A stretch of DNA of 64,000 nucleotides from Macrostomum lignano (lineage: Eukaryota). This document shows positions 55,348 through 63,894 of the stretch, piece by piece; the stretch's first letter is position 1; each line of letters opens with the position of its first letter. The notes under the pieces are model-generated. The model saw nothing but the letters and a program-made list of their open reading frames with translations, was not told the origin of the DNA and ran no database searches. The DNA is taken from positions 1 to 64,000 of the forward strand of contig NIVC01003260.1 of NCBI GenBank assembly GCA_002269645.1. The letters run 5' to 3'. The position numbers and the translations under genes are program-made.

Positions 55348-57302
55348 ATGAACCTGCAATCCGAGGAAGCGCTAGCCGACCGACTAAAAAACTGGGAGGA
55401 GCAGCGGCAGCGGCGCGCTGACCAGAGCGCCACCATTGTGAGGCCGAGCGGATTTATCGGCAACCTGCTGGACGCCAACATGAGCTTTCTGTACAAAATT
55501 CCCTCCTATGTATTTGGCCCGTTTCCCCTCTACACAATGGGCCTGGTGAGCAGGCACAATTTCTTTCTGGTTGGCCTAACTTTGCTGCTGATGAAGCTGG
55601 GTCTCCTGATTGCCCTGGCTGTCTATCTGAACATGCCGTCTGCTGCTAAGCGAGCCAGAATGCACCCGTGGGCGTACACGCCGAAGGAGACCGCCCAGCT
55701 GGACAGCATGCTGAATGATTGGCAGGGCTACGTGTTCAGCTTCAGGACTGGCCGGGTGATGTTCAGCTGCCAGCTGGCTCTGACGCTGCTGCTGACGCTG
55801 CTGACGGCCTACGCTCTCACGGGGAAGGTGCCGCGACTGCGGATGCTTCGGATGTCCAAACTGGCCAAGTTTACCAACTTTGTCAGCCTGCTTGTCAGCC
55901 TGTTCCACATCCTGCAGGTGAGGCATCAGGCAATGGGCAGTTCCACATCCTGCAGGTGAGGCATCAGGCAATGGGCAGTTCCACATCCTGCAGGTGAGGC
56001 ATCAGGCAATGGGCAGTTCCACATCCTGCAGGTGAGGCATCAGGCAATGGGCAGTTCCACATCCTGCAGGTGAGGCATCAGGCAATGGGCAGTTCCACAT
56101 CCTGCAGGTGAGGCATCAGGAAATGGGCATAGGCATTTCCACATCCAGCAGGTGAGGCATCAGGCAATGGGCATGGGCAGTTCCACATCCTGCAGGTGAG
56201 GCATCAGGCAATGGGCAGTTCCACATCCTGCAGGTGAGGCATCAGGCAATGGGCAGTTCCACATCCTGCAGGTGAGGCATCAGGCAATGGGCAGTTCCAC
56301 ATCCTGCAGGTGAGGCATCAGGCAATGGGCAGTTCCACATCCAGCAGGTGAGGTATCAGGCAATAGGCATGGGCAGTTCCACATCCTGCAGGTGAGGTAT
56401 CAGGCAATAGGCATGGGCAGTTCCACATCCTGCAGGTGAGGCATCAGGCAATGGGCATGGGCAGTTCCACACCCAGCAGGTGAGGCATCAGGCAATGGGC
56501 ATGGGCAGTTCCACATCCTGCAGGTGAGGCCACAGGCAATGGGCAGTTCCACATCCTGCAGGTGAGGCATCAGGCAATGGGCATGGGCAGTTCCACATCC
56601 TGCAGGTGAGGCATCAGGCAATGGGCAGCAAGGCCGGTAAAATTGCAAATTTCCCCATTATTTTCCCTTTATCCCCGCGACGCCCGCGCAGATGCTGCTG
56701 CCGGCGCCATTCATAGCCCAGCTGGCCAAGCTGAAGCTGCTGGAGCTGCAGTCTGCCGGGCTGGTCAATACCACCCAGCTAAACTTGAAGATATTCTACG
56801 ATAACAAGGCCAAACACTCGGGATCTTCTCACAAGCCATTCTATCCCAGCTTCATGGACAAGGTGCACTTCAACGAGAAGTGCTGCGGCGTGCGCTCCGC
56901 CGACGACTGGATGGAGTTCTCGGCCGAACTGGCCATCTACGCCGAGTTCCTGGCCGAGCGGCCCGGCCAGCTGCCGCCGAGGTTCCGCAGCCACCCGCCG
57001 CTCAGCTGCTACGATCCCAGCACGCATCGGCCGAACAAAAACTCCTGCGCTCCGTCGATTGCATCCAGATACCTGGCTAATCAAGACGAGCTCCTGCCGC
57101 TAAGCATGATAGCCATACTCAGCATTGTGGCCGCCTTCTACCTGCAGCGAGCCTACACAGCTCAGGACGGCTTGGCCGGCCTCGACCCCAAGGCCATCCG
57201 GCTGGCTGGCGACGTCGCCTCAGCGAGCGGCCTGACTGGCGGCTCCGCGGTGACCGACCGGCAGATTGACACCACCGTGCCGCTGGTCTCCGTGCCCACC
57301 AG
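55348..57302 (+). CDS. Tetraspanin-like 4-TM domain (exons 1-2 of the fusion model)
   Basis: Exons 55348-55917 and 56692-57302. Three hydrophobic helices precede a large loop with DKVHFNEKCCGVRSADDW, PLSC and a final NSC, then TM4 LLPLSMIAILSIVAAFYL: the CCG / PxSC / C signature. Confidence 0.8.
55900..56628. repeat. 38/44-bp tandem array built from the exon 1 / intron 1 junction
   Basis: 18 copies of TTCCACATCC(T/A)GCAG|GTGAGG counted by eye. Confidence 0.95.
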
Positions 57303-57581
57303 GTGGGTTGGCTGTTGATAGCCAGCTGCCAGAGTCCCCAGACTGAAGCTGGAGACTGTTGGTGCTGCAGGGCAGACAGTGGGTGCTGCAGGGCAGACAG
57401 TGGGTGCTGCAGGGCAGACAGTGGGTGCTGCAGGGCAGACAGTGGGCACTGCAGGGCAGACAGTGGGTGCTGCGGGGCAGACAGTGGGCACTTACAAGAG
57501 ACACCCAGGCAAGAGACTGGGTGCCAGTGTGAGGGCTGCACCGCATCAAAACCCAATTCTCACTGCACACTCCCTTGGCAG

Positions 57582-63500: not shown

Positions 63501-63894
63501 AGGCTCCCTGTCCCGTCACAACACCCTCCTTCCTTCCCACGCAGGTGCTGCAGCGAATCCTGGCGGAGAAGTTCAACATTGATCCGTTCGGCATAGTGAC
63601 CAAGCTCCGGCTCCGCTCGCCCACTTGGAATTCCATATTTGGCAGCCTGCCATTTATGAACGGCAACGTACAGTGTCTCTGCTGTGGCGATCGGGCTTTG
63701 AGCAGTTCAAAATCTGTCTGGAATGCAACGGCGCCTACTGCAGGCCCTGCTGGTACCAGCTGAACTCCATGTGCCTGCTGTGCATCCTGCTGTACAAGCG
63801 GCTGGCTGTCGACTACGAAGAGACTCGCGAGGAGCTGCGCCAGGCGATGCAGATGGAGAGTGCCGGCGAAGCTGCCGGATCTCCGGAGCAGTAG
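57582..63894 (+). CDS. DC-STAMP-family protein (DCST1/DCST2, Sneaky, SPE-42-like) with C-terminal Cys-rich RING-like domain
   Basis: Exons 57582-58785, 59547-59687, 59974-60120, 61276-61758, 62588-62803 and 63545-63894, all GT-AG and phase 0. Motifs GPFQTLMHNL...SMQC, Cys-rich ectodomain, YMSRLRPFLCALFYPEQQRRRTVALYNQLL, and CLCC...CLEC...YCRPCW...CLLC. One 1-bp frameshift at 63693-63695. Confidence 0.87.
58850..59432. repeat. 23/24-bp minisatellite (TTTGGAGTGAATAGTGGGTGCTGT)n, intronic
   Basis: Read directly. Confidence 0.93.
59691..59954. repeat. (TTAG)n microsatellite making up almost all of an intron
   Basis: Begins inside the donor GTAAGT at 59688. Confidence 0.97.
60250..61227. repeat. 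14-bp GGAAGATCTC-core minisatellite, intronic
   Basis: Variants GGAAGATCTCAACA, GGAAGATCTCATTG and GGAAGATCTCAGCG. Confidence 0.92.
61811..62075 (-). mobile_element. tRNA-derived CORE-SINE, 5'-truncated
   Basis: Minus strand: B box GGTTCGATTC, then GTGTCCTTGAGCAAGACACTTAAC...CAGTTCACCCAGCTGTAAAATGGG (closely resembles the MIR CORE as I recall it), then a 3' region ending in (ATT)n. The A box appears lost to the adjacent array. Confidence 0.75.
62076..62395. repeat. 24-bp minisatellite (ACTAAGCTTCGAGAATGTGACATT)n, intronic
   Basis: Read directly; related units also at 61775-61810. Confidence 0.9.
62945..63325. repeat. GGCGCCATAATATA-core minisatellite, intronic
   Basis: Read directly. Confidence 0.9.

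Follow-up and report, generated by a model that had tools for sequence, protein, structure and literature searches.

Introduction

Gamete fusion requires a set of membrane proteins of the sperm: DCST1 and DCST2, Sneaky in Drosophila, and SPE-42 and SPE-49 in C. elegans. DCST1 and DCST2 belong to the small number of sperm factors for fertilisation that are common to vertebrates and invertebrates, and their mechanism is still unclear. Tetraspanins organise partner proteins laterally in membranes, and those known in fertilisation, such as CD9 and CD81, are chiefly proteins of the egg. A recent preprint places DCST1 and DCST2 within a conserved multi-protein sperm complex (10.64898/2026.05.13.724128). 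Here we analyse a stretch of 64,000 nucleotides from the flatworm Macrostomum lignano (assembly Mlig_3_7, GCA_002269645.1, contig NIVC01003260.1, positions 1 to 64,000; hereafter the window), in which the gene BOX15_Mlig000509g3 appears to join both families in one polypeptide, with a tetraspanin followed in frame by a DCST-type protein of the DC-STAMP family.

An earlier reading of the window, made from its letters alone (the sequence-only reading), had proposed this natural chimera and had offered, as an alternative, a two-gene unit resolved by spliced-leader (SL) trans-splicing. We examined the gene model, its copies in M. lignano, the two protein modules and the occurrence of the same architecture in other organisms. 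With a probability of about 0.88, we consider that one gene encodes a single ten-pass tetraspanin-linker-DCST1 polypeptide.

Results

An intron joins the two reading frames

The exons were rebuilt from the raw sequence, and the window coordinates are those of the contig (positions 45348-64000 are 100% identical). GenBank annotates the gene at 55348-63763, with the 1196-residue product PAA52339.1, and the translation of the eight-exon model as assembled equals this protein residue for residue. The gene lies on the + strand and has GT..AG at all borders of its eight exons (Table 1). The borders and the junction of the eight-exon model put forward in the sequence-only reading are therefore kept, and its open frame up to 63894 is not (its exons sum to 3722 nucleotides, 2 modulo 3). 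Similarly, the proposed length of about 1240 residues (394 of tetraspanin and 846 of DCST) is correct for the intact paralogues only, the copy in the window giving 1196 (394 + 802).

At the junction between the two modules, the donor CCC ACC AG/GTGGGT (57302/57303) and the acceptor TTGGCAG/G ATG GTC (57581/57582) define a phase-2 intron, whose removal (57302 joined to 57582) restores the codon AGG of R394, followed by M395 and the DCST frame onward, exactly as had been claimed. If the intron is left unspliced, the tetraspanin frame meets TGA at 57316-57318, where the tetraspanin had been predicted to end in that case, and then TAG (to 57321). The gap of 279 nucleotides (57303-57581) has a CTCAC close to its 3' end, and the reported lack of AATAAA can be extended, as 13 variants of the poly(A)-signal hexamer were tested and all are absent from the junction gap in each of the four gene copies. 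The annotation pipeline placed the gene without a poly(A) cut in this gap, and no SL sequence was found within the 64-kb window. An in-frame GT..AG join of two adjacent open reading frames (ORFs) is weak evidence alone; since such a join is expected by chance in about 1 case in 3, the evidential weight rests on transcript-based annotation and on other species.

Transcript-based annotation, gene copies and selection

The Mlig_3_7 gene set derives from a genome-guided RNA-seq assembly, in which the program TBONE divides transcription units wherever SL or poly(A) sites have been mapped by experiment (PMC5730564). In this set the copies g1, g3 (the copy in the window) and g5 are annotated uncut, as one fused gene, and the 5'-partial model of g4, which opens with the shared R codon of the junction, has the same R/MVRP. 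The identical R/MVRP junction is also found in UniRef A0A1I8GX48 (1228 residues), an entry whose provenance (assembly or pipeline) is not established. The same junction thus joins the halves in four to five gene copies and in two annotations (Mlig_3_7 and UniRef A0A1I8GX48).

In the homeologue g1 (contig L001) the junction intron has 708 nucleotides instead of 279, GT..AG is kept and poly(A) hexamers are again absent. The exons of g1 and g3 differ by 46 substitutions, only 8 of which change an amino acid, and the ratio of non-synonymous to synonymous change (pN/pS) is 0.083 in the tetraspanin half and 0.057 in the DCST half. Both halves are therefore kept under purifying selection.

The same architecture in other organisms

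An exhaustive HMMER search of 1.84 billion representative sequences returned 226 relatives at E <1e-3, all 226 of them matched through the DCST half. The 149 that were listed were screened for N-terminal extensions with transmembrane (TM) segments and CCG, and then with Pfam. Tetraspanin and DC_STAMP domains were found together in at least four clusters among the matches listed: Paragonimus westermani (KAF8572061.1, 1306 residues), Trichobilharzia regenti (CAH8826299.1, 1327 residues) with T. szidati (CAH8827963.1, 1337 residues), Calicophoron daubneyi (CAL8079585.1, 1080 residues, with the tetraspanin truncated at its N-terminus) and a protein from a coral metagenome (L005, ERR14224704_277333, 1129 residues). 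Both domains are also present in Taenia solium (KAL5966444.1, 1176 residues). The architecture that the sequence-only reading had suggested looking for in other flatworms was thus indeed encountered.

In three of these cases the junction can be followed in the genomic sequence. At the loci of P. westermani (L007, 8424-10079) and T. solium (L006, 4064-5590), the CCG loop, TM4, the linker and the N-terminal DCST TM region (SKRFRC..LGLT.GQS..GP..NL) are all read in a single uninterrupted open frame, and in the coral metagenome an intronless ORF of 1129 codons, on a contig of 3681 nucleotides, spans both modules. With the junction inside one open frame in all three cases, no splicing decision is needed there. 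We regard this comparison with other organisms as decisive. The run ERR14224704 belongs to the Tara Pacific long-read coral metagenome and consists of genomic DNA (PMC13083261); we had considered whether the uninterrupted ORF of L005 might be that of a transcript, and rejected this on account of the origin of the run.

The DCST half of the coral-metagenome protein is about equally similar to the DCST1s of annelids, arthropods and flatworms, a pattern which suggests that the fusion may reach beyond flatworms or may have arisen more than once. Among flatworms, a single origin would be the parsimonious view of proteins that share order, partner and phylum. Other N-termini were seen in long unfused relatives from sea urchins, crinoids and a copepod, and in one SH3-bearing protein. 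A word-indexed homologue search with the fused query or with its DCST half recovered its own cluster only, and the same search with a profile of six fused proteins gave one further match, which was irrelevant.

The T. solium protein KAL5966444.1 omits 29 in-frame codons of the genomic sequence MIEF01007207.1 (L006, around 4340-4430; VTFYVPIFRKGCIEAVGDRLHPEFYGFLK). These include the conserved tetraspanin 'GC' position of the fluke proteins, and the gap in the annotated model is therefore probably a mis-called intron.

The tetraspanin half

Both halves score above their Pfam thresholds, so neither fails to match the family to which the sequence-only reading had assigned it. For the tetraspanin half the pass is marginal: PF00335 matches residues 165-341 with 33.1 bits against a gathering threshold of 32.1 (E = 6e-8). 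Hydropathy peaks at residues 74-92, 137-161, 181-199 and 323-341 leave a loop of 123 residues between the third and the fourth, and the AlphaFold2 (AF2) model places helices at 70-94, 134-158, 175-211 and 331-349, with short helices inside the large loop. The loop signature is present (C254-C255-G256, P293-L-S-C296 and C309), and CCG, W, PxSC-D and C are invariant among the aligned fused proteins. When a profile of five fused tetraspanin modules was compared with the PDB sequences, it found peripherin-2 (1.5e-12), ROM1, CD63 and TSPAN7/10/15. Searched as a single sequence against the same PDB sequences, the M. lignano half gave noise only, and phmmer with this half found no match among the 149 listed representatives.

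The DCST half, topology and predicted structure

The C-terminal 846 residues clearly pass Pfam DC_STAMP (PF07782), scoring 74.5 bits where the threshold is 25 (E = 1.3e-20). In an alignment of 86 sequences, C559 and C1051 are invariant, C723, C734, C742, C777 and C790 are at least 90% conserved, and the cytosolic-loop motif of the family, FDNxYI, has diverged to FCNHYV in M. lignano. The closest unfused relatives among the matches listed are named DCST1 or sneaky at source (they come from lamprey, the tunicate Styela, the nemertean Tubulanus, amphioxus, a scorpion, a bedbug, an oyster and a stalk-eyed fly), and a few are named DCST2-like. Judged by these source names, the fused DCST part would be of the DCST1/Sneaky type.

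Structure prediction had been suggested as a check in the sequence-only reading. In the AF2 model the predicted local distance difference test (pLDDT) exceeds 90 for the DCST TM core and the DC_STAMP domain, and in a model of the tetraspanin module alone it is 56; residues 323-434, between the modules, have a pLDDT <50 and are predicted to be disordered. A Foldseek comparison of the full-length AF2 model with the PDB returned long-helix noise only and no DCST structure. From the AF2 helices and the alignment with the Taenia protein, we infer that the DCST part has six TM helices, with both termini of the protein and the linker in the cytosol; the large loop of the tetraspanin and the ectodomain of the DCST part would then both be extracellular. 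Such a DCST part, with cytosolic ends, would suit a tetraspanin C-terminus, which agrees with the compatible topology proposed earlier.

A frameshift in the copy of the window

The copy in the window has CGGGC at 63692-63696, where the copies on contigs L001, L002 and L004 have CGGGGC. Because of this change from G4 to G3 at 63693-63695, the frame is shifted and ends at 63761-63763, so that the window copy as assembled keeps the first CxxC of the RING alone. The full C4C4 RING is present in the copies g1, g4 and g5 and in UniRef A0A1I8GX48. When one G is restored, the window product is the 1240-residue PAA48771.1 except for L157V. The difference is either a recent deletion of one nucleotide that inactivates the RING tail or an error of the assembly in a homopolymer.

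Features of the gene and of the rest of the window

Table 1. Exons, introns, protein landmarks and intron arrays of BOX15_Mlig000509g3, in window coordinates.
Feature	Position	Strand	Description
Exon 1	55348-55917	+	phase 0 at both ends; start codon, cytosolic N-tail of ~70 residues; matches the start of the PAA52339.1 coding sequence
Exon 1, contents	55567-55623 (TM1); 55756-55830 (TM2)	+	tetraspanin TM1, TM2 and first part of TM3
Intron 1	55918-56691	+	GTGAGG...CGCAG; nearly entirely a 38-nt x 18 tandem array
Exon 2	56692-57302	+	remaining TM3, large extracellular loop, TM4 (57088-57144), first 53 residues of cytosolic linker; phase 2 end
Exon 2, loop signature	56881-56889 (CCG); 56998-57009 (PLSC); 57046-57048 (C309)	+	
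Junction intron	57303-57581	+	GTGGGT...TTGGCAG; in-frame TGA TAG at 57316-57321; 21-nt x 6.5 repeat at 57353-57488
Exon 3	57582-58785	+	G57582 completes R394; ATG 57583-57585 = M395
Exon 3, contents	57733-58035 (TM1-TM3)	+	remaining disordered linker, DCST TM1-TM3, start of helical Cys-rich ectodomain
Exon 4	59547-59687	+	ectodomain
Exon 5	59974-60120	+	end of ectodomain; DCST TM4 (~60028-60120)
Exon 6	61276-61758	+	cytosolic loop with diverged FDNxYI...ID.RR motif; Pfam DC_STAMP match from 61435
Exon 6, contents continued	61528-61584 (TM5)	+	TM5; extracellular beta loop with NxT sequons
Exon 7	62588-62803	+	TM6 (62624-62680); DC_STAMP match ends at 62752
Exon 8, as assembled	63545-63763	+	cytosolic helix; first RING CxxC (63674-63685); then 22 out-of-frame codons to TGA 63761-63763
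G3 run	63693-63695	+	G4 in three other copies; 1-nt deletion or assembly indel
Remainder of RING C4C4 tail	63696-63894	+	FEQFKICLECNGAYCRPCWYQLNSMCLLC..., readable in the +1-shifted frame only; TAG 63892-63894 = stop of the intact copies
Intron array, 21-mer	57353-57488		
Intron array, 23-mer x26	58828-59433		
Intron array, AGTT x66	59691-59955		
Intron array, 14-mer x70	60249-61226		
Intron array, 24-mer x13	62077-62391		
Intron array, 23/41-mer	62942-63332		

Every intron of the fusion gene carries a distinct tandem array, and the lengths of these arrays vary between the homeologous copies, as in the junction intron (279 nucleotides in the window and 708 in L001). The 38-nucleotide unit of intron 1 repeats the end of exon 1 together with the GTGAGG donor and includes the acceptor-like GGGCAG/TT. 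With 18 copies of this donor-bearing unit, the pre-mRNA would have about 18 extra perfect donors, at a spacing that is not a multiple of three. The next gene downstream, beyond the end of the window and on the opposite strand, encodes methylenetetrahydrofolate reductase (MTHFR) in the contigs of all four copies (L001, L002, L003 and L004), with an annotated length of 440 residues in two copies and 674 residues in the other two.

Elsewhere in the window, a gene of the Piwi/Argonaute family lies at 11887-14801 (+ strand), with the PAZ domain and the first half of Piwi in an ORF at 12800-14293 and the second half in an ORF at 14331-14801; between the two ORFs lies either a short intron or a break in the reading frame. 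Remains of retroelements are found at 3039-4443 (+), 21022-22002 (+) and 24357-26753 (-), and comprise a reverse transcriptase-RNase H-integrase of the long terminal repeat (LTR)/gypsy type, a separate reverse-transcriptase ORF and an endonuclease ORF of the long interspersed nuclear element (LINE) type with a PHD-like finger. Very long tandem arrays occupy 34070-35290, 41857-46064, 49800-52500 and 52786-53766; their strand skew is extreme (GC skew to -0.62, AT skew to -0.93), and they give rise to spurious ORFs of up to 900 codons.

Discussion

The best explanation of these data is a single gene, BOX15_Mlig000509g3, whose product is one ten-pass membrane protein with a divergent tetraspanin, a predicted disordered linker of about 100 residues and a DC-STAMP protein of the DCST1/Sneaky type, the halves being joined in M. 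lignano by cis-splicing of the 279-nucleotide phase-2 intron. The annotations, the splice sites of the homeologue, the other species and the single open frames support the natural chimera that had been proposed. Several points weigh against this explanation. The support for the M. lignano junction is second-hand, coming from published annotation and not from RNA reads, and no expression or functional data for the flatworm members were found in the literature searched or in the supplements of three M. lignano papers (in which Mlig000509, DC_STAMP and DCST were not found either). On the side of the protein, the tetraspanin half passes its Pfam threshold by a margin of 1 bit only, and a Foldseek comparison of the module-only AF2 model (pLDDT 56, predicted template modelling score 0.30) with the PDB gave no significant match, the fold-level confirmation having failed because the alignment is too shallow. 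With a hidden Markov model built from the tetraspanin modules of the other fused proteins, the M. lignano module reaches 19 bits only, which makes the single origin of the fusion a matter of parsimony and not a demonstration. The RING is missing from the window copy as assembled. Finally, the ATG one nucleotide past the acceptor and the two stops 13 nucleotides past the donor would also suit a two-gene unit.

In such a unit, TGA 57318 would close the tetraspanin frame, the DCST mRNA would be trans-spliced at 57582 and start at ATG 57583, and the fused model would be an artefact of annotation. The proximity of these stops and of this ATG to the splice sites is what the arrangement would predict, and in M. 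lignano about 30% of the genes are trans-spliced and operons with short gaps exist (PMC8629364). Nevertheless, TBONE, although designed to split genes where SL or poly(A) sites are mapped, kept this one whole in all copies, the 13 poly(A) hexamers are absent from the gap in every copy, and TTGGCAG, the acceptor, departs from [T/C]TNCAG, the motif found enriched at SL acceptors in the same study. An upstream cis donor, which is present here, was found to favour cis-splicing (Conrad et al. 1993, as cited in PMC8629364), and in Paragonimus, in Taenia and on the contig from the coral metagenome both modules are encoded without interruption in a single ORF. We therefore regard the two-gene alternative raised in the sequence-only reading as disfavoured and highly improbable. 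A milder variant keeps the fused gene and gives it extra outputs: retention of the junction intron would yield a tetraspanin of 398 residues (ending in RWVGC), and occasional SL addition at 57582 would yield a DCST-only protein from M395. The diverged homeologue on L001 has retained both the stops that follow the donor and the methionine that follows the acceptor, and M395, which the other fused proteins do not share, is possibly a lineage-specific start. However, no such isoform is annotated among the five database members, and the AUG of the SL itself, joined at 57582, would open a short out-of-frame upstream ORF overlapping ATG 57583. The proposal is a purely structural idea, and we hold it to be unlikely, though clearly less so than two separate genes.

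A different doubt concerns the window copy alone, which could be a young pseudogene: a real G4 to G3 mutation would drop six of the eight RING cysteines and leave the function to the other copies. GGGG and the intact tail are indeed found in three other copies, and the recently duplicated genome of M. lignano has redundant homeologous copies (PMC10468722). On the other hand, the exons of the window copy are those of the intact g5 save for one substitution and the indel, and L004, another contig of this assembly, aligns to the window with 13 gaps over 4.3 kb and has many one-nucleotide indels. Moreover, one-nucleotide homopolymer indels are a classic error type of long-read assemblies. The pseudogene is a serious candidate, yet we give it somewhat less than an even chance.

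The ORF and the sequence model are not new, as predicted fused proteins are already in GenBank and UniProt; the earlier statement that no described protein joins the two families stands for the literature searched and fails for these databases. No paper on a tetraspanin-DCST fusion or on a flatworm DCST was found in the searchable literature, including reviews of DCST evolution and the 2026 preprint on the complex. The fusion is conserved and under purifying selection, and it occurs on both sides of the deepest flatworm split sampled (from Macrostomum to flukes and tapeworms). These findings speak for the two families being functionally coupled within one membrane.

By analogy with DCST1/2, Sneaky and SPE-42/49, the fused protein would act in sperm, and the most likely reading is that of a sperm-membrane DCST1 with its tetraspanin partner supplied in cis. 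The attached tetraspanin would then give, within the same chain, the lateral membrane organisation or partner binding that usually comes from separate tetraspanins; the label of two membrane-fusion modules, which the protein had been given, is a functional inference. A bolder idea takes the flatworm protein as a 'Rosetta stone': across animals, DCST1-type factors would pair with a tetraspanin that sits alongside them in the sperm membrane, and the pair would be covalent in flatworms and in at least one coral-associated eukaryote. We consider this generalisation speculative and rather unlikely, but if it were true, a sperm-side tetraspanin would be an unrecognised component of the conserved DCST1/2 machinery, and the flatworm protein would be a natural single-chain version of it for structural and genetic study. 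In other animals, a cis-acting tetraspanin partner of DCST1/2 is a testable idea. M. lignano is tractable, since transgenesis and RNA interference exist. Flukes and tapeworms, parasites whose reproduction is a target of control, have the fused gene as well.

The comparison with known systems can be made at the level of each module and of the whole architecture. With tetraspanins such as CD9 and CD81 of mammalian eggs, peripherin-2 and ROM1, CD63 and the schistosome Sm-TSP-2, the M. lignano module shares the four TM segments and the large loop between TM3 and TM4 with CCG, PxSC and Cys; unlike them, it is very divergent, has an N-tail of 70 residues and a first loop of 44 residues, and its C-terminus runs on into a second membrane protein. 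With DCST1, Sneaky of Drosophila, and SPE-42 and SPE-49 of C. elegans, the second module shares the DC_STAMP domain, the multi-pass TM core, the long helical ectodomain with near-invariant cysteines, the cytosolic-loop region and, in the intact copies, the C4C4 RING. Unfused DCST1s lack the N-terminal tetraspanin and the linker of about 100 residues, are shorter (about 700-900 residues against 1240) and are about 15-26% identical to the M. lignano protein. The closest counterparts in architecture are the Tetraspanin and DC_STAMP proteins of the other flatworms (five accessions), which agree with it in module order, in the positions of CCG, PxSC-D and C, in the landmarks of the DCST part and in the RING, at a pairwise identity to the M. 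lignano protein of 17-19%. They differ from it in a longer linker with a conserved YISNAKLL..CQ...WLEKG.KIGW, absent from M. lignano, and in the position of the junction, which lies within one exon in neodermatan flatworms (mapped in Paragonimus and Taenia) and in an intron in M. lignano.

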